The notes below the pieces were generated by a model. That model did not search any database, was not told where the DNA came from, and saw only the letters and a list, made by a program, of their open reading frames with translations. The position numbers were made by a program, and so were the translations under genes. A stretch of DNA of 64,000 nt, taken from positions 1-64,000 of the forward strand of contig JAIVFI010000036.1 of assembly GCA_025558095.1 (NCBI GenBank), given 5' to 3'. Positions 19,560 through 59,807 of the stretch are shown piece after piece. This DNA comes from Hyaloraphidium curvatum SAG 235-1 (taxonomy: Eukaryota; Fungi; Monoblepharomycota). The number at the start of each line of letters is the position of its first letter. Position 1 is the first letter of the stretch.

Positions 19560-19930
19560 CGCGTCACGCACGTCCTCTGCGACCCCAGCACCGCCCAGCA
19601 CGTGGTTCAGGCGCTGGAAAAGCCGGAGGAGCGGTTCCTTTGTCGAAAAGCGGGCCAGCTTGATGTTCGCGAAGGCTTGCGACTGGGAACCAAAACGATC
19701 AGATTCAATTATTCAGTATCGATGCATACCGTCGAGGCTCCACTTTGAGTGTAACTAACAACCAAGGGTGGCGCCCACTTGTCTTCATCCCCGGATCGGT
19801 CGTCGCCATCGAAAAGCACTCCTGACCGGCCCGCTGGTTCGCCTCCCGAGGTGAGGTAGTTCTCGAGCGTACGTTGACCAAGATAGCTCGAAGCTGGAGT
19901 GTTCGAATGCATTCCGAGCTCGATTTGAGG
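19560..19930 (-). pseudogene. Decayed fragment of the 7-TM family gene at 22845-24396
   Basis: 19600-19790 aligns by eye with 23572-23770 (e.g. aaagccggaggagc, gactgggaaccaaa(a)cgatcagat, cgatgca), including the intron 3' end; frames are disrupted. Confidence 0.6.
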
Positions 19931-22844: not shown

Positions 22845-24396
22845 TCAGCCGCACGACATTTCCAGCGTCACGTACGTCTCCTGGGCCCTCAGTACCGACC
22901 ACACCCCGATCAGCACCGTGCACACGGTCGCGAACGCCGTCCGTAGCACGGAGTACGTCACAACGAATCCCAGCAAGCGCGCGCGGTACCCGTCCACCTC
23001 CCGGATGGATCCCAGCACGGCGTCGTGTGCGCGCAGAGATGCGGCAGCGGCGGCGCGCGGGCCCAGCGGGTCGGCAAGGAGCGGATCTGCGAGGATGCGA
23101 CGGATCTCGAGGCGCGCGCGGGAGTACAGGTCGCGCACGGATTCGACGGAGCCGTTGGCGGCCGCAAAGTTGACGAGGTCGATGGAGAGGATGAGGGCGA
23201 CGTAGCCGAGGTAGTAGAGGAAGAACCACGGGATGCAGTTGCCCGCAATCTGGCGCAAAAGGCTGGTCGTTAGAGGGGCACGGGAGCTTGGCGAGCGGCG
23301 CAGGGCCCACGACGTTTGCGACCGCGCAGATCGCCATCGCGGACGAAACGAAGAGCGGCGAGCTGACGTTGGCGCTGGAGATCCGGTCACGCCATGCGGC
23401 TGCCAGATGCTGGTGCAGTCTATGTAGAGCTGTCCAGATGTGGAGCAAGTTGAGGAAACCGCGCCTGTCCCGGCATCTGGGTCGTCTTGGCCGTCACTGA
23501 CGACGGGAGCCCCTTCGAGAGCTTCGCGGCGGAGGTCGGCGAGGAGCAATGAGAGCGCCGTGCGCACGGAACGGTGGTGCAGGCGTTGGGAAAGCCGGAG
23601 GAGCGCCACGTTGGTCGAGAAGCGGCCCAGCTGGATGATGGGTATGATGGCGAAGACCTGCACCACGACTGGGAACCAAACGATCAGATCCATCGATTCA
23701 GTTTTCGATGCACTACCTTAGCCATCACTTACTTTGGACAACAACCACCAATGTGGCCCACCAGGTGGACCATGTCTCGGCGCCGACAAGCACTGTCCAG
23801 GTGGCCGCCAGAACCAAGCCAAAGTGAGCCACGGATTTGACGACCATCTCCAGGACGCGTATCGCGGCGGCTCCGCGGGCGACTGTTCCCGCGCAGCCCC
23901 GGCAGCGGGCACGGGCCCGCAACACCATCCAGCTTCTTCCTGCGGGCTTCGTGGTTGATTGTGGACATGTAGGCCAGGAGCAGCGAGTTCCACATCGAGA
24001 TCCTGAACTGGAGCAGGACCGCGGTCGCCGTCGCCACGATGGCCTGCGTGCGCCCGAATCCGCCCGGCACGTAGAACAGCCAGAAAAGGACCCAGACGGC
24101 GACCAGGCACAGGAAGCCGGCGGTCATGGCTTGGAAGAGGAAGCGCGCGGCGGGCGCGGCTGCGCGGTGTAGGCGGAACAGCAGCGCCAGCGACGCGCTC
24201 GCGGCGCGGAGGTCCGAAGCCATCGCCTTGTCGGTCAGTGGACGCGTCCTCCGCAGCTCCGCGGCGCGGTCGGGGGGCGCCGGGTGGCCCGAGAGGTCGT
24301 CGGGGACGTTTCCGGGCGACGGGAAGAGCGCGAGCCATCGGCCTCGGAGAACGCGGGCGCGTCGGGGGGAACAGAGTCCTTGGACGCCGGTGTCAT
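22845..24396 (-). pseudogene. 7-TM family protein (GRL/7TM-ion-channel-like), copy 1; two introns and ~3 frameshifts
   Basis: WLALFPSP N-terminal motif; GNCIPW; DLVNFAAAN; RARLLGFVVTYSVLRTAFATVCTVLIGVWSVLRAQETYVTLEMSCG*; frame changes near 24338, 23910 and 23420. Confidence 0.7.
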
Positions 24397-24699
24397 ATTG
24401 AGGGCCACAAAGGAGAGTAAACGGAAGACTTGAAGAACGGGGTGCGTGGGAGGCTGGGCGACCATAAGCTTCCGCGGAAAGGGGATACCTGGGGGACACA
24501 ACACCGGACAGTCAGCGGCGTATAGAGGCCATCGTGCCAAAGAGTCCAAGGACTCTGTACGAAAGTCTACTCGAATCGAAATCAAGATGCCTGGAGAAAG
24601 ATACACCGCGTTCCCTCGTTCCCATCGATGCCGCGAACCAGAGTCGAAGATCCCTGTAGAAGACCACCCTCCCGCACATATCGCTCCCGCCCGTGCCGC

Positions 24700-27600
24700 C
24701 TAACGCCTCTCCACGAGCCTGAACCTGACCAGCAGCACGAACAGCACCGCCAGCCCGACGTTCCACCCGACCAGCGCAAAGGCGTTGGTCCAGTACGAAC
24801 CGAGGTCGAACCCGAACAGCTTGCCGAGGATCGTCGAGGCCGGGATGGAGATGGAGATGCCCTCGAGGTTGTCGACGATCTGGAAGGGGGTGGTTGAGCG
24901 GGGGGATCCCGGGGGTTCGGAAGGCAGCGGGGACCCACCATGCTGTCGGCCGCCTCGTTGACGGCCAGCGCCTCGGTCGCGTACCGGAAGATGCTCAGGT
25001 ACTGTATCCAGCTCAGCGCGGCGGGGATGGTGGCCAGGTTGATCAGGAACCCGCCAAAGAGCATCGAAAACAGCATGAAGATGCTGCAGGCCAGGTTGGC
25101 CGTGCCCGGGTCCTGGATGCCGGCGGCGGCGCACATGCACAGCAGCGCGGCGGCGCAGTCGAAGAGCACGAGGACGAGGAGGAACTTGAGGAAGGCGTCG
25201 GCGGTGGGGGTGAGGCCGACCATCCAGTAGGCCGTGGAGCCGACGATGAGCGCCGGCACGGCGCGGAGGGGCAGGAGGTCGAAGAGCATCTTGGCGAAGG
25301 AGAAGGCCGCGGGGCCGTAGTACCCCGCCGCGCGCTCGCGCACGAAGAGCAGGCGCTCCCCGGCGAGCACGCCCAGCGCCGAGAGGGCCGAGAAGCCGAG
25401 GAGGGCGAGGACGAAGAACATGCCGCCGAGCTTGTTCTGCAGGCCGCCGATGGTCTGGGGCGACTTGAAGTACAGCCCGCCGACGAGGAGGCCGAGGGCC
25501 ACGGCGACGGCGAGGTGGGCGACGAGCAGCGAGGGGTCGCGGAGGAGGGTGCGCAGCGAGCGCCCGCAGACGGCCGAGAGGCGCGTGAGCACCGAGACCT
25601 TGGGCTGCGAGGCCTGCGCGGCGAGGGTGGGGTAGTCGGCGCCCTCGGGCTCGGCCTCCTCCTCGGACGCGCCGGTGGAGCCGTCGGCCGACTTGCGGAG
25701 GTGGCGGACCGAAGAGTCCTCGATGGCGTAGCTGATTTCCGAAGCCGGCTTCTCGGGGTCGCCGCCGACAGAGTAGCTGCGCACGCCGGAGCGAGAGAGG
25801 GTATCGGCCTGCTCGACCGCGAGGTCGACTGGAGGAAAGCCAAAGGTAAGCGAACCATCGAGACACCGAACGTCGAGCAACCCACGGAGGTAGTCCGCCA
25901 CGTTGTAGTCCTCGGGACACTCGAACCCCCTCCCCGCAAAGTGCGCCTTGGCCGCCCTCGCCTTGCCCGCGTACATCACCTTGCCCTTACTCAGCAGCAC
26001 GAGGTCGTCCAGCAGCCTGAACGCGTCCGAGCTCGGCTGGTGGATCGACAGCACGACCGTCTTGCCCTCGGCCGCGAGGTCCTTGAGCGTCCTGAGCAGG
26101 CTCGCGGCGGTGTGGCTGTCCAGGCCCGAGGTGGGCTCGTCCAGGGCGATGATCCCCGACCCCGTGACGAGCTCGCATGCGATCGACACGCGGCGGCGCT
26201 CGCCGCCCGAGACGCCGCGCACGCCGCTGCCGCCGACGCGGGTGCCGGCGACGTGGGCGAGGCCGAGGGAGGCGATGACCGCGTCGACGCGGGCCTCGCG
26301 CGCGGCGTCGGGGAAGCCCTCGGGGAGCCGGCACCGCGCCGAGAAGGCGACGCACTCGCGCACCGTCATGTAGGGCAGGAAGTGGTCCTCCTGGTCGACA
26401 AAGGCGACGCGCTTGGCCAGCTTGCGCCGCGCGACGGGCTCGCCGCCCGCCGAGAAGGCGCCCGTCACCCGGCCGGCCTTGGCCTTGCCCGCCACCAGGT
26501 CCAGCAGGCTCGACTTGCCCGACCCCGAGGGGCCCATGATGGCCGTGATCCTCCCCGCCGCCGCGCGCCCCGAAACCCCCTCCAGAACGACCCTGTGCCC
26601 CTTCTTCCCGCGCTTGCCGACCTCGTACCCGACCCCCTCGAACGCCACGTCCGCCCCGCGCGTGCCCACGTCGTCAACGACCGCCTTGCGCGCCTTGACC
26701 TGCCCGGCCTTGGCGAACGCGAACGACCCGCAGCACACGAGCAGCAGCGCGCCCACCGCCGCCGCGCCGCCGGCCACCGCGGCCGTGTTGACCGTCCGCG
26801 TCTCGGCGGCGGCGGGCGCGGCGCCGGCCGCCTGGGAAGTCTGCTCCCGCGACGCGAGGCATTCCCCGTGCGCGCAACCGGAGAGTTTGATCCCCTGCGG
26901 CAGGATCCCCTTGAGCTGGTCCACGCGGAAGCGGCACTCGGTGCCGTTGCCGGCGGCGTCGAACGGGCAGTCGAGCGTGAACGGCCCCGTCACGGAGGAC
27001 AGCGGGCCCGTGAGGTCCACGAGGCTGCCGGGCTCGCCGCACATCTTTGCGCCCTTGACGCAGTCGCACCTCGCGTCCGCGCAGTCCCACACGTCCGCCC
27101 CGCCCGCGAGCCGGCGGGTGCACCGCGAGAAGGCGCACCGGAAGTTGAGCTGCGGGCCGTAGTAGATGCTCCCGACCGCGGTGCCCTGCGGCAGGTTGCG
27201 CGCCAGGGCGACGCGGATGGGCGCGCCGGGGAACAGGGTGGTGAGCATGGGCTCGTCAACCGCGCACTGCGAGTTGCTCTGCCCCGAAACCACCAGCGCC
27301 CCTTGCCCGCACGTGGGCCGGGAGGAGTTGACCGCGGCGCAGCCGGCGTCGGCGGTGCAGATGTTGCATTCCAGCCCTCCGAACCCGGCGGGGCAGGTGC
27401 CGTCGCTGGTCAGCGGCAGCGCCTGCGCGGGGGTGCTCCCGCCCAGGCCGGCGGGCAGGGTCATGGTTGCGTTGGGCTTGGGCCCGCCGTTCGGGTCGCA
27501 CGAGGCCACGACGAAGTTGACGATCAGCGAGACGTACTGCTTGTACGCCCCCACCACGCGCGAGGAGTAGGAAGCGCGGTCGAGCGCCGAGACGACCGAG

Positions 27601-28419
27601 ATGGTGCAGTTTGCGCAGAGGAAGTCCGGGTTGGTGAGCACCCCGAGGGCGCCTTGCAGCGCGCCGTCCGAGGACGAGTTGCCCAGCCCCGAGAGCACCG
27701 GACCGACGGTGCGGACGAGGTCGAACACGCACCAGTCGTTGGTGGAGTTGCTGCCGGGCTTGGGCTTCTGGCACCCGACGTCGAGCGCGGCCAGGGCGAG
27801 GTCGACGACGTCCTTGGCGGTGAACTGCGTGCCGAGCGGCTGCAGGAAGCCCTGCAGGGTGGGCGAGATCTCGTCCTTGTTCTTCTCCAGCACGGGGCCG
27901 ATGTCGATGATGACCTCGGTGCCGCACCTCGGCACCACCACGTCGCCCCACTCGCGGATCCGGTCGGCGCACGAGCCGCCGCACAGGCCGGGGAGCGCGT
28001 TCTGGAAGGCCACGGCGGCGTCGTAGTTGGCCTGCAGGTTGGGCGAGACGACGAGGGAGAGGCCGGAGAGGAGGGAGATGAGGTTGCAGTTGACCAGGAT
28101 CTGGACGAGCTGGTCAAGGGGGAGGGCGGTTAGACACTCTGTGCCAGAGTGTTCCGGGGCAGCAGCCCACCTTGGGGTCCAGCAGGCCGAAGAAGCAGCC
28201 GGGCGAGAGGCCCTTGCCGAACAGCGAGGTGAAGTCGCCAAAGTCGAAGCCGCGGGGGGCCAGGCTGTGGGCCGCGGCGGCCTCCAGCTCCGTGGTGAAC
28301 GCCGCGGCGTGCGCCTCGCGGGAGAGGGCGGGGGTGTCGGGGGCGGCCGCGGCGAGGGTCGCGGCGAGGAGGACGGCCGCGAGTGCGAGGAGCACCATGC
28401 GGGCTGCCATGCTGGCCAT
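24700..28419 (-). CDS. ABCG half-transporter with large Cys-rich/EGF-like lumenal N-terminus (ADP1-like); spliced
   Basis: Signal peptide; CPAGFGGLEC EGF-like motif; TM; Walker A GPSGSGKS, signature VSGGE, IIALDEPTSGLD, SIHQP; ABC2 membrane domain. Confidence 0.9.
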
Positions 28420-29068
28420 GGCGTCCGGCGGTGGGTGGTCGGAGAGGGAGAGGTGAATGTGATGGGCGTGGAGGCCGCCCCGGGGGACCTTATCCGCCCG
28501 TCGGGGGGCGGTCGGGCATCCGCCTCAGCAGGCGAGGCGGTGCGCGGCGGAGCAGGGCCGCAAACTCGGCCCATAAACAGCACACGATCGGGGCGATTCC
28601 CGCCCTCCGGCGCTCGGAGATTTATCTGCATGGGTCAAGGAAGCTACATGCGCGCTGCGGCGGCGGATGGAGCAGTGGGAGGCCGGCAAACGGGGGGGAG
28701 ACGGTTACAGCGCCTGCTCCGCCACGTCCGCCTCACTGGACCCCGGACCTCTCAACCGGCTGAACCGCCTTGCCCCCGCATAAACCCGGTGCGAGGAGAT
28801 TAAATTCAAGCGAGGGTGTTTAGGAGGAGGCCGTAGCGGTGCTGGACTGGCAGGCTGGATGGGAGGTCAAGGGGTGGGGACCCGGGCGCGGGCGCGTACC
28901 CTGGACCCCCCTCCCTCAACTGACAGTGCTCCGACATGTCCCCTTCAGCATCCATGAGCTACAATCTGCAGTGTTCATGGGTGTCTGGCTCCTAATCCCG
29001 CCTCCAGCGGGGGGGTCCCGTGACCCCCGAATAGGCTCGCCAGGCCGGTGTCCGCCACCTCCCACAAC

Positions 29069-39643: not shown

Positions 39644-41212
39644 ATGAAAGCCGACGGGGAGCCGTCGGACGGCGGACCGCCCCCGTGCGCGACCTTTACG
39701 ACCGCCGAGTTCTTGGCCCTTTTGCCTTCCCCCGCCCCGCGCCGCGCTGCGCTGCCGTGGAACGTGCCCGACCCTTCTTCTTTCGTGGACCCTGCCGCTT
39801 CCGCGCGCCGTGCTATCCGCTCACGGCGCCGGCCGCCGGCGATCCTCTCCGCGCTGTCTCCCTATCCGGGGTTGAGGCAGTACGTGTCTCTCGCTTTGGC
39901 CGCGCAGGCGTCAAAGTACACCTTCGTCCTATGGGCATCCAAACACGTGGCGGCGATACCGCCCGTCGTCGCGACTTGGATTTTCGGTCGCGACCGGTTC
40001 GGGACCCGGCAGCTGGCCACCGCGACCGCCGTGTTCGCATTGAACAGCCTCATTTGGCTCGCCATGTTCCTGCGCTCCGGATATATGGTAGAACGGCTCA
40101 GGAACTCGACGAGGGATCCCGAAGGGGACTCAAGGGCAAGGCGGATGACCAGATTCTGGACGACCACAGGCTGGCTCCCCTGGTACGATGGGTGCAGCTC
40201 GTATCATCGACACGTGAGATGGATTCCGTTGCTTGCGCCCCCGAGGAGTTGCGGTCGCAAGGCCCGGCGGCGCTCGTTGCCCACGTCGAAGGGGACCAGC
40301 TCTGCCACTGCGCAAAGACTTCTTGCCTCGGATCGCTGCCAAACCGGGTCTTGTTCATTCTCTCTGGAGTATACGCTCTCATTTTGGTGGTGACACTCTT
40401 GTGCTACGTTGCTTTCTTCAGGTACACGCCGCTGGTGACCCTCGGAGCGCAACCTGGAGCACTCCATGGAGCGCGGTCCTCGGCACGGTGTACCTCGTGC
40501 TTGGAATCTCCTTCTACCTCGGCGCGGTCGACGCTCCGCTCATCACGGCTGGCAGCTACCTGCTGGACCTCGACACAAGGCTGCGGGTTCGCGCTTTTCG
40601 GATCGCCCTCGGGTTCCAGGTGGATCGTTTCCGTTTCGCGGAGCTCAGCGGCGGCGACTGTCCCGTCCCGGAGGCGGCAGGTGGCCCGGACGCCGAGCTC
40701 TACATCACCTTGCACCACGCCATTGCTCTGACCTGGAAGTACCGCTTTGCGCAGTTCGCCATGTCGCGGTTCCTGGCCCTCGGCGGATTCTTCCTCGAGG
40801 TGTCCCTGGCCGTCGTGTACGTGGCCGCGAGCGGGTGCCTGCCGGCCTGGGCGCTCGTCGCCACGGTCCTCTGGATCGCCGTGTCCGTCGGCGAGCTGGT
40901 CGCCATCGCCGGGGCCAACGCGCAGCTCGACACCGTGGCCGGGCTGTTCTCCGCGACGCCTCAACGGGGCTCGAGCTGCTCATGCTCCGCGTCGGACCCG
41001 GCTCGGCGCTCCGTGTGCGAGCCGAGGACACGTGCAGGGTCATGGCTGCGATGTTGGCGGTGGACGTGAGGGCCAGGTTCCTGGGCGCGCACGTGTCGAT
41101 GGGCGTGGTCAGGACGGCGGCGGCGACGGCGCTGACGGTGGCCGTGGCTGCGTTCGGGCTGCTGAGGGGCGCCGGTGTGTTTGTGAGCCTCGACAACGTT
41201 TGTCCCGGGTAG
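39644..41212 (+). pseudogene. 7-TM family protein (GRL/7TM-ion-channel-like), copy 2; three frameshifts
   Basis: EFLALLPSP; LVRWVQLV; HVEGDQLCHCAKTSCLG; SGCLPAW; ELVAIAGAN; RARFLGAHVSMGVVRTAAATALTV...DNVCPG*; frame changes near 40170, 40450 and 40950. Confidence 0.7.
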
Positions 41213-47623: not shown

Positions 47624-48993
47624 TCACGCCCAACCCGCGGTGCTGCAGTCCGGCCCGGTCCAGCCCGGCGAGCACACGCACACGCCGGATACGCACCGCC
47701 CGGTGGCCCAGTAGACGCCCTGTCCGCAGCCGGGCGGGCAGCCGGCGGCAGTGGAGGTGGTGGATGTGGTCCGGGAGGTGGTCTGCGTCGAGGAGGTGGT
47801 TCTGCGGGTCGTCGAGGATATGGCGGTCGTCGAGGTCGTCGGGGGCGAGGTGGTGGTGCTGGCCGGCTTGGTCGTCGTGGATGCGGAGGAGGTGGAGACA
47901 GAGGAGGTGGGGGAGGTGGAAATCGAAGAGGCGGTCGAAGAGGGCGAGGCGCTGGTTGTAGGGCACTGAGTCACGGTCGTAGTCTGCGGAAGACGCAACC
48001 GTCAGTCAAGCGGTCCTACAGGAGACCCGGTCGCACGCACCTTGGTGACGTAGACGGTGATCGGCGAGGCCGTCGCAGTCGCAGTGGTGCACGACGCCGA
48101 AGAGCTCGCGGTCGTGCTCGTCGCCGAGGCACTCGAGACCGTGCTCGTAGAAGCGCTTGCGGTCACGCTCGCCGAAGTCGTGCTGGTCGCGCTCGTCGAA
48201 GAGCTCCCGCCAAACATCGACCCTTCCTTGTACGCCTTGGCCCCCGTGCACTCCTCCATCGTCACCAGCGTGTACCCCTTCTTCCTGATCTCCGCAATGA
48301 CGTTCGCCGCGGCGTCCACCGTCCACGAGTTGATGTCGTGCATCAGAGCAATCGGCCCGCCCGCCGATCCGGGCGCCGGCAGCGCCTTGGCCCACGATAC
48401 CATCGCCGCGGCGGACTGGTCCCGCCAGTCGAACGAGTCCTGGCTCCAGACGGTGATCGAGAGGTTGAACTTGCGGACGGTGGCCCCCGTGGGGGCGTCG
48501 ATCTCGCCATAGGGCGGGCGCATGGTGGCGGGACGGCGGGAGATGGCGGAGAAGACGGCGGATTCGGTGCGGTTGAGCTCGGAGGTGACGGCGGAGGCGG
48601 AGATGGTGGGCAGGTAGGGGTGCGTGAACGTGTGCGAGGCGATCTGCGGGAAGGAAAGGTGAGCGGCGTGCCAGGAGACGTCGCCGCCAGCATGCGCACC
48701 TGGTGACCCTCGGCAAAAGCGCGCGCGACGACGGCGGGGTAGTCTTGCACGTTCTGGCCGATCACGAAGAAGGTGACGTGGGCCGCGGCGGCCTTGAGAG
48801 TGTCGAGCAGGCGCTCCGTGTGCTGGGCAGGCCCGTCGTCGAAGGTGAGGGCGAAATGCGCGGGGTTGATGCACTGCTTGAAGTCGAAGACGCCGGTGTC
48901 GGCCCAGTAGGCGCGCCGGGCGAGAGGGGCGGCGGCGGCGAGGGGCAGGGCGGCGAGGGCGGCGGCGGCGGCGGCGGCGGCGAAGAGCTTCAT
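47624..48993 (-). CDS. Secreted polysaccharide (chitin) deacetylase, CE4/NodB, with S/T-rich stalk and C-terminal EGF-like domain; spliced
   Basis: Signal peptide; CE4 motifs ALTFDDGP, HTFTHP, MRPPYG, DSFDW, IALMHD; CVSGVCVCSPGWTGPDC. Confidence 0.92.
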
Positions 48994-49844
48994 GGTCGCG
49001 GGTGGTGGTTCGTCTGAGTGTGAGTTGATGGCGATTGGACGTCGGGGAGGCCGTGCTTTATACCTCGATGTGCGGTCCGTGTGACGGTACACGAGCGCGG
49101 ACGAGCGGAGTTTGAGGCCCGTTACACCAGGGGTTGTGGTGCGCCCGACCGGCAATGTACCGGGCTCCGGCCCCACGCCGCTATCGTCGGACCTTCTTTC
49201 GTGATGACCGGAAGTGAAATGAGCTGAAACATTGGCCTTTGGGGGACGAGGATGAGAAAGGAAGCACGGGATGGACGGCGACGTCGTGCAACGAGATTGG
49301 GAGAGTCTCCGCCGGATCCCAATCCGGGCTCGCAGCGCAAAGAGCTCACGTAGCAGTCGTAACATCATTTAATCTTTGGAATCGAACGACAGATCGCCCC
49401 GGCCTTCCGGCTGCTGACTGGCGCCCGCCCGCCCCCTGTACTCCACCCCGTCCATTGGCCCCTCCTCGTCCTCGAGCTCGCTATCCTCCACCTCCTTCGC
49501 GATCTGCCGCGCAACCCGGCGCGTCCGGATTCCCCAGATTGCTGACGCGCCGCGGACGCTTCCAGCCGGTCTGCGGGAAATAGGTACAGGAATTCCAAGC
49601 ATGTCAGTGGCTCGCATCAGATGAACGACGTCCGGGCCCTGAGCCCTCCCGGGGCAATCCACGGCGCCTTGCATCAAGGCGTTGCGGATCGAGTGGCCAC
49701 AAAAGCTGCCCTTCTATTTCTTTTATTTCATTTTCTCGATCGTTCTTATCTGATTGGTTGCCGGAGCCTTCGGTGCCCGTGAGCGGCGGCAGCGGCGCGG
49801 GGGATTTGCCTCACCCCGCTCGTCGCTGCCTCCCGAAGTTCGCG

Positions 49845-51296
49845 ATGGCGCCGCCGGAGCCCGTGTCCTTCGCGCCGCGCGAGCTGCTCGCGCTCTTCCC
49901 CGAGCCGCCGCCGCCGACGCCGTTCCCGTCGGGCGCGGCGGGGCCGCCCGACCCGGCGGCGGACGCGCGCGCGCAGTCGCCCCTCACGAAGGCGGCGCTG
50001 CTGTCGGCGCTCGCCCGGTCGCCCGCCCTGCAATTTGCCACGCGCGTGCAGCTCGGGGACCCGTCGGCCGCGCACCTGTTTGCCCGCAGCGCGCTCCTGT
50101 TCGTCTCGACCGCCCTCGTCGCCGTCGTGCCACCGGCTTTAAGCGCCTCGGGCTCGCTGCAGCTGGCGATCGGCACCGCCGCTTTCCTACTGGCGGTTGC
50201 CGTGCCGCTCCTCGTGCTTCCTCTGGCGGCAAAGTTCCGCGCGTCCCTGGCCCCTCGGCACACCGCCGACCTCTCGGCGCACTGCACCGCAGGCCTCGCC
50301 CGGTGGCAGCAGCTGGTGGCCGGCGACGCCCCCTCGCCGCTCACGGCGCACGACCCGGCCGACGAATTGTGTCCCTGCCCCGCCGCCTCGTGCGCCGGCG
50401 GCTGCGTGGGCAAGGCAGACTGGCAATGCGCTGCAGAGTGGGCCGTCAAGTACTGCCTGTGGCTCTTCATCGGGCTGTGCACGTGCTGGTCCGCTTTCTT
50501 CGCCCCGGGGGCCCTCGATCGCGCCTGGAGCATCGTCGTGGTGGCGCAGTACCTCGCCGTCAGCATCCTCATCGGCTTCGCATTCACCGCCGCCAGGCTC
50601 TACACCAGCCCGCCATTGCTCGAGGTCACCGACCGCCTGCGCCGCCGCGCCGTGGACCTCGCCCTGGCCGGCATGCTCGCGCCTTTGCGCGCCGGCGCCG
50701 AATCCCTCGGCGCCTCCCCGTTCCCGTCTCCCCCCCCTCCGGGCACCCTCGAGCCCTTCCAGGAGCTGCACCTCCTCCTCACCTCCTTCTGGGCCCGCCG
50801 CGTGCGGCGCCATGCCACCTCGCTCCCCATCCTCCTCACCCTGGGCCCGTACCTCGCCTGGGCCGTCGCCAACGCCGCGGCGTGCGCGTGCATCCCCTCG
50901 TACTACCTCTCCTACTTTGCCTACATCGCCGCCGTCTCGCTGTACGACCTCGTCGCCGTGGCAGCGGAGAACAGGGCCGTGGACGGGCTGCGCGGGGCAT
51001 ACGGCGCCGCGCTGCGGGAGCTCCGGCTGCTCCGCGACCGGGTTGCGCTCTCCCCGGCCCCGGCGACCGGGGACCGGAACGACCTCCTCGCGGCCCTGGG
51101 CGCCCGCGCGGAGCTGCTCGGGTGCTTCGCGGCGGACCTGGACGCGTGCAGGGCGCGGCTGCTGGGTTTCGTCGTGGACGGGGGCGTGCTCCGCACGCTC
51201 GCGGCGACGGCGCTGACACTCCTGGTCGGCGTCTGGGGGATCCTGAGGGGGCTGGGGGTGGTGGTGGTCATGGGGACCATTTGTCCGGTAAGGTAG
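49845..51296 (+). CDS. 7-TM family protein (GRL/7TM-ion-channel-like), copy 3; intact and intronless (483 aa)
   Basis: Seven hydrophobic segments; LARWQQLV; HDPADELCPCPAASCAGG; DLVAVAAEN; RARLLGFVVDGGVLRTLAATALTLLVGVWGILRG..TICPVR*. Confidence 0.8.
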   Translation: MAPPEPVSFAPRELLALFPEPPPPTPFPSGAAGPPDPAADARAQSPLTKAALLSALARSPALQFATRVQLGDPSAAHLFARSALLFVSTALVAVVPPALSASGSLQLAIGTAAFLLAVAVPLLVLPLAAKFRASLAPRHTADLSAHCTAGLARWQQLVAGDAPSPLTAHDPADELCPCPAASCAGGCVGKADWQCAAEWAVKYCLWLFIGLCTCWSAFFAPGALDRAWSIVVVAQYLAVSILIGFAFTAARLYTSPPLLEVTDRLRRRAVDLALAGMLAPLRAGAESLGASPFPSPPPPGTLEPFQELHLLLTSFWARRVRRHATSLPILLTLGPYLAWAVANAAACACIPSYYLSYFAYIAAVSLYDLVAVAAENRAVDGLRGAYGAALRELRLLRDRVALSPAPATGDRNDLLAALGARAELLGCFAADLDACRARLLGFVVDGGVLRTLAATALTLLVGVWGILRGLGVVVVMGTICPVR

Positions 51297-51335
51297 AAGG
51301 AGCTCGGTTCTGGGGCGCCGATCCGTGGTGCGACT

Positions 51336-52576
51336 TCAGATCTTGGACACCTCGCCGCGCAGCCTCTTGCCCAGCCCGTCCCTCTCGTGCGTCCAGACAT
51401 CTGCGGCCCATCCTCAGCGCGCTTGCCCCCGCACCGACGGAGCACCTACCGATCTTCCCCTTGCCGTGGATGAACAGCCCCTGCCCCGCGAGGCTTTCGT
51501 CGTCAACGGCAAACATCATGGCGGCCACCACGTCCTCCACCGACAGCTTGGCCGCGCGCTCCTCCATCCGCTTCCAGGTGGCCTCGTCGGCGCCCACGGG
51601 GGGGATGTTCTTGAGGCTGCGCCAGAGGGGCGTGGCGACGGCCGAGGGGCAGATCGCTGCGTCGGGCGCGAGATCAGCCCGGGCCCCGACCGCGGCGGCG
51701 GGGCGAGGTAACCCCACCGTTGACCCGGATCCCCTTCGCCGCGAGGTGCCCCAGGCTCCTCGAGAAATGGTACACGGCGCTCTTTGTCGCCGCGTACACC
51801 TCGGCGTCCTGCACCGGCCGCAGCGCCGCTGCGCTGGCGGTGTTGACCACGCACCCGCCGCGCTTGCCCGACGCAAGCCACGAGCGAACGGCGAGCTGGG
51901 TGCCGTAGATGACCGCGTTGACGTTGACGGCGACCATTTTGGTCTAAGCGGGGCGGTCAGTGGGTGCAACGGGGGAGGAGGGCCCGGGACGGACCCAGGC
52001 GGTCGAGTCCAGCGAGTCGGGGTCGTGGAAGAACTTGTCGCCGTCGCCGATGCCTGCATTGTTAACAACAATCTAAATGGAGGTCAGACGGACCCCGGGA
52101 AACGGCGGCGGATGGGAAACCCACGTCGTACCCGCCAAACTTGTCCTCCGCGAACTGGAACAGCCGCCTGACCTGCGCGAGGTCCGACACGTCCGTCTTC
52201 AGGAAGTGGTAGAACCCGATGTCGAGCTCGCCCGCGCTGTCCGGGCCGCAGTCAGCTTCCAATGATAGTGAGGGCCGCAGGGCGACGCAAACTTCTCCTG
52301 CAGCTCGTCCGCGAGCTTCTGCCCGTTGGCCTCGTCCAGATCGCCCATGACCACGATGCAGCCCCGCTTCGCGAGGGCCCGGGAAATCCCGGCTCCGAAA
52401 CCCGAGGAAGCGCCCGTGACTCTGCGAATGGGGGAGACAAGCGTCCGTGGGAGACGGGAGCGTCAGGGGCGATTCGGGAGGCCAACGGCGCCGCAAGGGG
52501 CGGAAGCGTACATGGCGACCTTGCGAGAGAGGTTGCGCTGCCCGGCGGGCGCGCTGGAAGCCGCGGCGGGGGCCAT
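51336..52576 (-). CDS. SDR, 15-hydroxyprostaglandin-dehydrogenase-like; spliced
   Basis: VTGASSGFG, VVMGDLD, TDVSD, NNAGI, VNVNAVIYGT, VNTAS, YAATK, AICP; last exon ends ...EVSKI*. Confidence 0.85.
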
Positions 52577-52793: not shown

Positions 52794-53951
52794 ATGCCGG
52801 GCAACGATGCGCCGTCCGGGTGGCGGCCCGACCTCGTGCAAATGATCGCTGACCGCACGAAGGAGCAGATCGCCGCGGCCGGCGCCGCGCTGGCCGTCAT
52901 GCGCAGGCCGTCATGCGCAGGCAGGCGCCCAAGCGGGGCCGCCCTCGGAGGATGCGAAGCACTCGGCCGACGTCGCGAAGCACCATTTCAGCCACGCGTA
53001 CGTGGTCATAAGTCTGCTTTCCTGGCCGGAAACGGATCTCGCCGGGTTCTGGGGGTCGCCCAGCGGCGGCTCCCCCGAGGAGCTCGCTTCCCGCGCCGCG
53101 CTGGACGTGTTCCGCTCCGGATGGCCCATTCTTCGGACGGCGCTCGCGGACCACGCGGGGCCCCGTTCGTCGGCCCGGCGGGCGGCGTGGGGGGCGGTCG
53201 ACGCCGCCGCCGGGGAACCCTGGATGGGCCCAAAGACACTCCAGGAGAAATGGGACGCCAGCAGATCCTACAACGCCCTGTTTGGCTATGCCTCCATGGA
53301 GGTCGTCTTCATCATCTCGATGCTGGTCAGGCTCTCGCGCCCCGTTCGGCGCAGGCTCGCCGAGGCCCCCGCCGTGCTGGACGACGTGCTCACTTCCCTG
53401 CTGCACCTCCCCATCTTCTGGGACGGCATCCTCTGCCGCCCGCTCGGCAAGGGTGGGAACCTCGGCAGCATCCCCGAACCCGAGCTCCTGCGCGTGCTGG
53501 AGTGCCTCGCGCCCACCGGCTCCTCGTCCTTCGTCCTGCCCATCATGGACAACGGGCGGCCGTGCCTGGCGCACTGGCGCGAGCTCGAGGCCCGCGAGAA
53601 GCATTGGCCGTTCGCGGTGTACACCAAGGCCGTCGGGGACGTGTGCTCCGACCTCGCCGCCGAGGGGAGCTGGTCCGAACCCACGCGGAAGCTCCTCGCG
53701 AGCATCCGGAGCGAGCTCGAGGTCGTCCACGGGCGATCGAGGATTCGGAGGACGCGGACAGCATGACGAGGATGATATCCCGGCGGATCAACCGCGGTAG
53801 GGCCGGGGACGCATGCGACCGGTGCGGCGGCGAAGGGGAGGAGGGCGGGCTGCTGAGGTGTTCGGGGTGCAAGGTGACGAGGCACTGCGGGGCGGCGTGC
53901 CAGAGGGCGGCGTGGGGGAAGCACAAGGCGACCTGCAGGGAGTGGTCGTGA
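52794..53951 (+). pseudogene. MYND zinc-finger protein, frameshifted
   Basis: C-terminal CDRC...LLRCSGCKVTRHCGAACQRAAWGKHKATC; 14-bp tandem duplication (gccgtcatgcgcag x2) near 52893-52920 and a second frame change near 53735. Confidence 0.65.
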
Positions 53952-58242: not shown

Positions 58243-59807
58243 ATGGATTCCGGCGGCGGTCCCGTCTCCCCTCCTCCTCTCCTCCAACCGAGCGCGTCTT
58301 CGCTGTCGCCGACCGCGTGGCTCTGTCTCTTCCCAAACGCGACGCCGGCCCCCTCCGTGCCGCCGCTCGACGCGGCCCCCGCGGACCCGGCCGCCGACGC
58401 GCGTCTCGCGTCGCCCCTCGACGCGGCCGCTGCCGCGGAACTCATGCGGTCGGGTGGCCGCCCGGCGATGGCCCGAATCATCCGTGCCGCGGGCGACCAG
58501 CGGCTGCTCTATCCGATCGCGTGCGCGCTGGAACTCCTGGCGATCGGGCTGGCCCTCGTCGCGTTCGCGTGGACGGGAACCAACGCGGGCGTCCCGCCGT
58601 TCGGGCCGCCCTCGTCGAGGGCCGCCGCGGGGGCCGCCGCCGCGGCAATCCTTGCGCTGGCGCCCGAGGTGTACATGTGCTGCGACCTGCTCTTGCGCGC
58701 GGCGGGGTTCACCACGTACGACCGCACTGCTTTCGGGGTCCTGTGCCGGTGGCGCCAGCTCGTTGAGGAAACTGAGGCAGCCACAAAGGACCTCAAACTG
58801 GAAGAGGCCGGGGCAGTAAGGGGCGAGACCCCGTCGCCGCTGATCCAGCATGATCCCGGCGACGCCCTCTGCCCGTGCCCGTCGGACTGTTGCGGTGGGG
58901 GCCTTTTCCTTCGCGGCGACGCCACGGAGCGGCTGATGAGCACCGTGCTGTTGCCCCTGCCGCTGATCTGCGTGTTCTTCTTTGCCCTCTGGACCCCTCT
59001 TGTGACGCTTGCCGGGCGGTTTTGGGGCTCCTGGGGCGCCGTCGGGGCGGCCGGCTGCATCCTGATGGTCCTTGTGCGGCTCGGGCTGTTCGCGCCTATC
59101 CGGAACCTGGTTTCGCACACGGTCAGCAGCGCCTCGCTGTCGCGGCGCCTGTACCGCAGGGCGCTGGCCATGTCCCTGCGGAGCTTCCTCCAGCGGTACC
59201 GCGCCCGCCTGGCCCCCGGACCCGGCGGCGCATCGGACGACCCCGGCGCAGCCGAATTCATGTGCAAGCCGCCGGCCTCGGAACTCCACGTGAGCCTCTG
59301 CCAGCTCTGGATCCGCGGCCTCGGCGCCTACAACGGCTTCTTCCAGCGCCTGATGGCCTGCACCCTCGCGTGCCTGGTCCTCTCCCTCCTGATCACCCTG
59401 GCCTCGGGGCCCTGCATCTCCGCCTACCAGATCCTCGGCGCCGCCGCGGTCCTGTCCAGGGTGACGTACGAGATGCTCGTCTACGCCGCGTACAACGGCC
59501 AGGCCGACGACGTCGTGTCCCTCTGCTCCGAGGCCCTCGAAGCCCTAGCCTCCATCGCCGGCGAAGCGGCGTGCGCCAGCGCACCGGACCACGCGGCGCT
59601 GGCCTCGATCCGCGCGCACGAGAAGCTACTTGCGCTGTTCGTCGCGCGGGCGGACCGGAGGAGGACAGGCTGTTCGGCAGGAGCATCGACGGGGCGTCGG
59701 TGAGGAGGTTCGCGGCGGGGGCGGCGACGGTGGGGCTGGCGGCGGTGGGCGCGCTGAGGGGGTTCGGGGCGGTGATCACGGTCGAGAACGTGTGTCCGCT
59801 GTCGTGA
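58243..59807 (+). CDS. 7-TM family protein (GRL/7TM-ion-channel-like), copy 4; one frameshift near 59663 just before TM7
   Basis: WLCLFP; DPAADAR; LCRWRQLV; HDPGDALCPCPSDCCGGG; GPCISAY; EMLVYAAYN; DRLFGRSIDGASVRRFAAGAATV...ENVCPLS*. Confidence 0.72.

Follow-up and report, generated by a model that had tools for sequence, protein, structure and literature searches.

The seven-transmembrane ion channel (7TMIC) superfamily brings together the odorant receptors (ORs) and the gustatory receptors (GRs) of insects, the animal gustatory-receptor-like proteins (GRLs), the plant DUF3537 proteins, and PHTF, and its best-known members are the receptors with which insects smell and taste. This article deals with a gene at positions 49845-51296 of a 64-kb stretch of DNA from Hyaloraphidium curvatum SAG 235-1, an early-diverging fungus of the Monoblepharidomycetes (contig JAIVFI010000036.1, positions 1 to 64,000; hereafter the window) and with the protein family to which it belongs, whose predicted fold resembles that of the insect receptors.

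Outside animals, reports of 7TMICs concern single genes or small families whose function is unassigned (PMC7746228; PMC9998090). The DUF3537 families count 4-12 members per plant, as against hundreds in H. curvatum, and the fungal 7TMICs described in print, GRL1 of Spizellomyces punctatus and GRL1 of S. palustris, are each a single gene (Benton et al. 2020, PMC7746228). In a later preprint (Himmel et al. 2023, 10.1101/2023.08.30.555482) the category 'Fungi' covers Chytridiomycota and Blastocladiomycota only, and its screen missed the earlier chytrid GRLs. In the literature that we searched, no paper ties Hyaloraphidium to gustatory or 7TMIC proteins.

An earlier note, made from the letters of the window alone, had taken the gene for one of several gustatory-receptor-like channel candidates, expanded in a fungal genome and probably annotated only as hypothetical proteins. 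The present analysis lends support to that interpretation as far as fold, topology, expansion, and annotation status are concerned. On balance, we judge it rather probable that the gene is an expressed member of a very large H. curvatum family with the 7TMIC fold that forms a diversified repertoire of ligand-gated channels. By a well-motivated analogy with the insect receptors, its members may indeed function as channels and play a chemosensory role.

Predicted fold, topology, and conserved residues

The target open reading frame (ORF) runs from ATG to stop codon on the plus strand in a single intact frame of 483 amino acids (the coordinates include the stop codon). Modeled with AlphaFold2 (AF2) from an alignment of its paralogues, the protein yields a very confident structure, with a predicted local distance difference test score (pLDDT) of 93.7, a predicted template-modeling score (pTM) of 0.91, and no segment below 50. 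We derived the layout of the protein from DSSP of this model together with the hydropathy of the family profile, whose hydrophobic segments coincide with the AF2 helices 78-99, 104-127, 185-219, 227-250, 332-347, 352-372, and 446-469. The seven hydrophobic segments described earlier, with long loops after the fourth and sixth transmembrane (TM) helices, are thus borne out by both approaches, and a long TM2-TM3 loop is present as well. The outer loops (EL1-3) measure 4, 7, and 4 residues, and the inner loops (IL1-3) 57, 81, and ~73 residues.

This asymmetry is accompanied by one of charge. Over 91 sequences, the inner segments are rich in lysine and arginine (6.9 per sequence in the N-terminus, 5.2 in IL1, ~9.7 in IL2, and ~8 in IL3), whereas the outer segments are poor in them (0.4, 0.5, 0.1, and 0.4 for EL1, EL2, EL3, and the C-terminus, respectively). 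By the positive-inside rule, the N-terminus is therefore placed inside and the C-terminus outside, which is the orientation that the proposed kinship called for.

Upstream of TM1, the model contains short helices at residues 11-17, 39-44, 49-55, and 60-71. The first of these is the conserved hydrophobic EWLALFP helix, which is modeled with high confidence, and the N-terminal region as a whole may be the counterpart of the re-entrant 'TM0' of ORs. TM4 is kinked at residues 251-255, between helices 227-250 and 256-286. Helices 256-286 and 304-331 of IL2 make up half of a four-helix 'anchor' bundle, and IL2 bears the conserved motifs LxxRLxxRA..LAL and ExYxxLH..L...W..R; the last 16 residues of the continuous helix 304-347 constitute TM5. 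Similarly, TM6 is the first part of a 50-residue helix (352-401). In the structure search, residues 244-441 match four-helix bundles such as syntaxin. TM7 is split, since helix 409-434 is hydrophilic and helix 446-469 hydrophobic; the former, TM7a, completes the anchor bundle alongside the cytoplasmic stretches of TM4, TM5, and TM6. The break between TM7a and TM7b spans 11 residues, RARLLGFVVDG (435-445), and TM7b is followed by a 14-residue tail that ends in C480-P. The same split-TM7 pattern is found in P0059 (helices 464-484 and 501-524).

Conservation is distributed unevenly over this layout. It is lowest in TM1, TM2, and TM4 (1.2-1.4 bits) and highest in EL3, the TM5-TM6 turn (3.05 bits), in TM7b, which exceeds all other TM helices (2.62 bits), and in the linker that precedes TM7b. 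TM7b displays a face of small and polar residues at positions i, i+4, i+7, i+11, and i+14 (T451, T455, T458 (in 90 of the 91 sequences), G462, and S/T/G465), flanked by R450 and R468. Six residues (H169, C176, C178, C183, C349, and N376) are invariant in all 91 sequences, two of which come from another species, and D173 and C480 are kept in 87 and 88 of them, respectively. The invariant N376 belongs to the DLxxxAAxN motif and is placed at the membrane exit of TM6. The motifs that the earlier note had read from the window copies, namely (L/W)xLFP, DPAAxAR, LxRWxQLV, one after TM6, and one at the C-terminus, recur as the family-wide consensus EWLALFP, DPA..R, RWxQL, DLxxxAAxN, and RAR(F/L)(L/F)GFxV..G..RT..VT..TV.VGLW..LRG.GV..T....CP.

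When the model is compared with known structures, insect chemoreceptors come first. Searched with Foldseek against the PDB, it finds insect gustatory and odorant receptors at nine of the top 10 ranks and in 12 of the first 13 matches listed. An independent, exhaustive search of 48,161 representative chains with VIA-align places members of the insect OR/GR family at ranks 1-7, each aligned over approximately model residues 46-470. These are (with the two values of each row in brackets, the score first) MhOR5 (13.5; 324), AaegOR10 (13.0; 340), ApisOR5 (12.6; 297), BmGr9 (12.0; 329), AgamOR28 (11.8; 338), 8z9a_A, the other chain of the OR5-Orco complex (11.4; 334), and Gr43a (11.1; 328). Gr64a scores 9.1 and the top unrelated row 9.7; the remaining high rows are four-helix bundles that cover residues 244-441 only. 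A fold search of the ESM Atlas returned a cnidarian cluster with template-modeling scores (TM-scores) of 0.59/0.70 over 358 residues, as well as an arthropod "Gustatory receptor" cluster (7tm_7, Trehalose_recp) at 0.40/0.60. Among the named clusters that a sequence-only language model considers neighbors, DUF3537 accounts for seven of the 30 matches at >=0.9, and 7tm_7, GUR-5, and SRR follow at 0.86-0.87. None of the tests that the earlier note had named as able to refute its reading has done so, and no profile search assigns the family to an unrelated known transporter or to any other known family.

Seven TM helices and a large, divergent family could also bring to mind G-protein-coupled receptors (GPCRs), with an outer N-terminus and signaling via G proteins. 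We consider this very improbable and the GPCR reading largely refuted: the positive-inside rule places the N-terminus inside, a split TM7 and long cytoplasmic helices are foreign to GPCRs, and none of the 91 members matches 7tm_1, 7tm_2, 7tm_3, or a fungal GPCR family of Pfam. Moreover, no GPCR or rhodopsin appears in the top 50 of the 48,161 chains, although the PDB is rich in both.

Size, spread, and expression of the family

The lineage expansion claimed for the family is confirmed. With the target protein as query, tblastn gives at least 100 matches in the 31.9-Mb genome of H. curvatum, drawn from 716 first-look candidates. The family profile gives 901 such candidates, of which 86 were scored, all at E <= 1e-35; as the other three copies in the window fall outside these 86, the true count must lie well above that number. 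When 1.84 billion cluster representatives were searched exhaustively with HMMER, 282 matched at E <= 1e-3, of which 190 reached E <= 1e-10, each match representing a cluster at 50% identity. Among 25 representatives sampled, 21 stem from H. curvatum, and all of these bear the name "hypothetical protein", as had been anticipated; three belong to the Logan assembly SRR26194948, and the remaining one to a JGI metagenome. H. curvatum supplies the closest database proteins, in line with the fungal origin first suggested, and the exact 483-residue product is absent from the protein collection searched. A word-indexed protein search, with either the single protein or the profile, found one match each, its candidate list being swamped by low-complexity words. 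Altogether, we put the H. curvatum family at no fewer than about 200 annotated genes, probably with several hundred loci in all. Its paralogues share 25-47% identity.

The Logan contigs (L031, 74 kb, and L032, 48 kb) have a G+C content of 55%, compared with 70% here, and are in partial synteny with H. curvatum contig C1; we accordingly assign them to a related species that has two members of the family or more. Neighboring genes on these contigs include a YVC1-type TRP channel and hamartin. In a FastTree tree, the two members from this relative stand apart, each being paired with its own representative, in all likelihood of H. curvatum origin (local support 0.84-0.86), which hints that part of the family's diversification may be older than the split of the two species.

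Most members are intron-less. Five paralogues (C38:104126-105652, C37:35725-37344, C12:731482-732948, C20:564298-565905, and C1:1112476-1114119) are all split at profile position ~361, in the GSCIP outer turn, where they show gaps of ~25-55 nucleotides (nt). This suggests an intron common to one subfamily.

The target gene itself is transcribed. Contigs from run X1 match it at 50021-50252 and 50382-50979 with 100% identity, and that this run is RNA follows from its contig over the neighboring minus-strand gene, which is spliced at six introns of 49-90 nt (CT..AC on the plus strand, hence GT..AG on the minus strand). The strand of the transcript cannot be read from the contigs, and its level is apparently modest. 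The neighboring gene, at 51076-52512 (-), is convergent with the target; at the 3' end, its transcript runs over the final ~220 nt of the target coding sequence, and its contig is ~10 times as deep as those of the target.

Given a G+C content of 62-76% and a window crowded with long overlapping ORFs, an ORF by itself is weak evidence, and one may ask whether the copies, scattered over many contigs and in several cases broken, are chance frames or the cargo or parts of mobile elements. This explanation is hardly credible, and we regard it as refuted. The flanks of 30 family loci have no repeats in common, the genes therefore not being carried by a mobile element, and despite identities this low the same six residues are invariant throughout the 91 sequences. 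The confidence of the AF2 model, the transcript contigs over the target, and the homologues in the relative with far lower G+C point the same way. At one of the 30 loci (L004, G000:C43:319801-324264) we observed inverted and tandem repeat units, 90-96% identical, with several copies upstream and one downstream; they do not occur at the other 29.

Relation to known families and possible function

According to the 7TMIC criteria of Benton & Himmel 2023 (PMC9998090), the family shows the hallmarks of the superfamily at the level of fold, i.e., seven TM helices in 483 residues, a length within the ~350-500 that the criteria give, an inner N-terminus, short outer and long inner loops, a TM4-6 anchor bundle, and a TM7 divided into TM7a and TM7b, whereas the sequence features of GR/GRL and DUF3537 proteins are lacking. 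For this reason we treat it as a new family of the 7TMIC superfamily and not as a gustatory receptor.

With the insect ORs and GRs (Orco, MhOR5, BmGr9, Gr43a; Pfam 7tm_6 and 7tm_7) it has much in common. They, too, are proteins of seven TM helices with an inner N-terminus and an outer C-terminus, loops that are short outside and long inside, a TM4-6 region that reaches into a cytoplasmic anchor bundle, and a TM7 split into 7a and 7b. Conservation is again strongest in TM7b and the anchor; likewise, they form large and very divergent families that include pseudogenes. On the other hand, sequence similarity between them is undetectable (7-12% identity in structural alignments), and the H. curvatum family has a short EL2, a long IL1 of 57 residues with an invariant set of one histidine and three cysteines (His/Cys3), and the outer Cys349 and Cys480. 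Its host, moreover, is a unicellular fungus without neurons.

The chytrid GRLs resemble it as 7TM proteins of zoosporic-lineage fungi with a GRL-like topology and a TM7 motif that is little or not conserved (they keep one of its four positions; PMC7746228). Going by their description, they are set apart in being single-copy and found by sequence similarity to GRL/DUF3537, compared with at least about 200 genes without such a link. Plant DUF3537 proteins (PF12056) have a similar size (~400-500 residues) and 7TMIC architecture and are the nearest named family by language-model features, but their Pfam model matches neither any member nor the genome. PHTF, from the PHTF-like class B, evolves slowly, occurs in one or few copies, and has very long N-terminal and IL1 regions, whereas the hyper-expanded H. 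curvatum family has a compact Cys/His module as its IL1. The signals of class diverge: a long IL1 is a trait of PHTF-like class B (10.1101/2023.08.30.555482), and the language-model neighbors are class A families.

How the proteins might work can be sketched from their better-known counterparts. By analogy with Orco, MhOR5, and BmGr9, four subunits would assemble through their anchor bundles, and, to judge from OR/GR structures, the Thr/Ser/Gly face of TM7b would form the wall of a cation pore at the center. For other new 7TMICs, C4 tetramers with contacts between anchor domains and with TM7b at the axis have been reported (10.1101/2023.08.30.555482). In the H. curvatum proteins, a small-molecule pocket that differs between paralogues could be formed by the outer half of the TM1-4/6 bundle, which is variable, and the family would act as a repertoire of ligand-gated channels sensing environmental or metabolic chemicals. 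HxxxDxxCPCxxxxC is a candidate cytoplasmic metal (Zn) site, judged by its conservation; its His/Cys3 residues, in the TM2-TM3 loop, would most likely bind Zn and have a structural or regulatory role. At the outer side, since the model pairs strands 349-351 and 473-475, the tail may be held to EL3 by way of its Cys480 and the Cys349 of EL3, possibly through a disulfide. The many very divergent genes, together with decaying copies (three of the four in the window), suggest birth-and-death evolution as in receptor repertoires. The chemoreceptor-like, ligand-gated channel repertoire of the earlier note has thus gained support in its fold, topology, and expansion; ligand gating, conduction, and the tetramer are what analogy would predict.

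Several observations weigh against this reading. The Foldseek matches are weak (best E 0.035, TM-score ~0.3, at a probability of 0.96-0.98), both structural models share one paralogue alignment, and the single best named language-model neighbor is TMEM39, which is not a 7TMIC. At E <= 1, none of the 91 members matches 7tm_7, 7tm_6, Trehalose_recp, or DUF3537 of Pfam, so that the profile link to 7tm_7 and DUF3537 that one might have expected did not materialize. A scan of the target and the 91 members yielded only scattered chance matches (DUF6167 at E 0.009, FCD, and others), and a sequence profile search of the PDB gave no OR/GR chain, only a chance match to VMA21 (E 0.49). The PF08395 and PF12056 models match nothing in the genome, a weak negative, since the control genomes of the tool are blank as well. 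The GR motif TYhhhhhQF is absent from TM7, where the TM7b consensus reads RT..VT..TV.VGLW..LRG. A tetramer prediction (four times residues 236-483) scored 0.00; as the partner fold was uncertain and the alignment unused, we list it here but rate it neither way. Finally, the channel role would follow from likeness of fold, and H. curvatum is non-flagellate, so a role in chemotaxis is not obvious.

Taken together with other traits, these points leave room for proteins that have a 7TMIC-like fold by descent or convergence without being chemosensory, such as PHTF-like proteins of the endoplasmic reticulum (ER) or endomembranes, proteins of self/non-self recognition, or structural or scaffold proteins. 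The accepted 7TMICs PHTF and DUF3537 are themselves without an assigned function, PHTF1 is reported mainly in the ER (PMC9998090), and a long IL1 would fit class B, while the invariant cytoplasmic His/Cys3 set suggests an intracellular partner or cofactor. However, the pattern of conservation is OR/GR-like (a variable outer bundle, a conserved small-polar face of TM7b, and a conserved anchor), hundreds of very divergent paralogues with frame-disrupted copies are receptor-like and unlike housekeeping membrane proteins, and the language-model neighbors are DUF3537 and 7tm_7, not PHTF. We thus hold a non-chemosensory role to be unlikely, though well worth keeping in mind, and continue with the ligand-gated channel repertoire.

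With some 200 genes or more, such a fungal repertoire would mean that massive diversification of the 7TMIC fold is not confined to animals or neurons. It would offer hundreds of natural, mostly intron-less sequences for structure-function and de-orphanization work, and with H. curvatum the question of what non-animal 7TMICs sense could be addressed in a unicellular organism. Annotation by sequence overlooks the family, whereas structure prediction from the paralogue alignment alone recovers it. The His/Cys3 set would be an added regulatory element open to testing; it may be a cytoplasmic metal or redox module of a kind not mentioned for other 7TMICs in the literature examined. More tentatively, and with some doubt, H. 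curvatum and at least one relative could possess the largest 7TMIC repertoire yet observed outside animals, i.e., several hundred genes for ligand-gated channels that form a chemical-sensing array with a His/Cys3 module. If so, the 32-Mb genome of a non-motile planktonic fungus would hold an independent, fungal invention of a large 'olfactory-type' repertoire.

Copies and neighboring genes in the window

A hidden Markov model (HMM) built from the alignment of 91 homologues was searched against the six-frame translation of the window, and frame-disrupted paralogues were searched piece by piece. It finds exactly four copies, at the places where the earlier note had seen them (22845, 39644, 49845, and 58243). 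Only the target has an intact single frame: its match is in one piece (49848-51290, +), whereas the others fall into two abutting pieces (58285-59801, +), four abutting pieces in different frames (39677-41209, +), and five pieces (22851-24346, -). The high divergence attributed to the copies is real, as the three others share only 28-32% identity with the target. The coordinates of the copies and of the parts of the target protein are listed below.

Coordinates of the target gene, its protein segments, and its paralogues in the window
Feature	Coordinates	Strand	Basis or remarks
Target gene, single exon, 7TM protein	49845..51296	+	ORF; full-length family HMM match, E 8e-133; AF2; RNA contigs
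Cytoplasmic N-terminal region, residues 1-77, with EWLALFP and DPA..R..PL	49845..50075	+	Consensus; 6.9 K/R per sequence
TM1 (78-99) and TM2 (104-127) with 4-residue outer loop	50076..50225	+	DSSP, hydropathy; least conserved helices (1.21 and 1.35 bits)
Cytoplasmic loop IL1, residues 128-184, with RWxQL motif	50226..50396	+	Consensus, K/R count
Motif HxxxDxxCPCxxxxC (His169/Asp173/Cys176/Cys178/Cys183)	50349..50393	+	Conservation in 91 sequences
TM3 (185-219) and TM4 (227-250) with 7-residue outer loop	50397..50594	+	DSSP, hydropathy
IL2, residues 251-331; helices 256-286 and 304-331 extend TM4 and TM5	50595..50837	+	DSSP; 9.7 K/R per sequence
TM5 (332-347), EL3 turn GSC349IP, TM6 (352-372)	50838..50960	+	DSSP, hydropathy, column counts
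Cytoplasmic extension of TM6 (to 401) and cytoplasmic helix TM7a (409-434)	50961..51146	+	Continuous helix 352-401, separate helix 409-434
Linker RARLLGFxV (435-445), TM7b (446-469), outer tail with Cys480	51147..51293	+	Conservation, column counts, helix break 434/446
Paralogue	58243..59804	+	Full length, but the frame changes once near 59660, immediately ahead of the RxRLFG linker
Paralogue, probably pseudogene	39644..41212	+	Three abutting frame changes; CHC replaces the invariant CPC
Divergent paralogue, multi-intron or pseudogene	22851..24346	-	Several frames; without His/Cys motif

The frame change near 59660 leaves too little space for an intron. In the minus-strand copy, the pieces cover profile positions 15-144, 194-253, 254-312, 322-361, and 328-491, and some of its frame changes sit at gaps of 46-71 nt that could be introns. 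A further relic of the family, once suspected near 19600, was rejected, since the profile reaches ~ -1 bit (E 23-26) at that place even when every HMMER filter is disabled, equal to the background of the window, in which dozens of places score alike.

Turning to the surroundings of the target, the ORF at 48343-49368 (-) contains a TFDDGP-type motif and by eye resembles a NodB polysaccharide deacetylase; run X1 has no contig there. On the other side, the ORF at 52794-53948 (+) carries a zf-MYND finger at its C-terminus (E 2.7e-9). In run X2, DNA contigs of low depth show two substitutions and a 1-nt deletion relative to the window (48829, 48832, 52466), which could be strain differences or errors. 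Farther away, the minus-strand paralogue is adjoined by a 1349-residue ABCG-type half-transporter (ABC_tran and ABC2_membrane) at 24582-28631 (-), which has an unusual Cys-rich N-terminal extension of ~650 residues.

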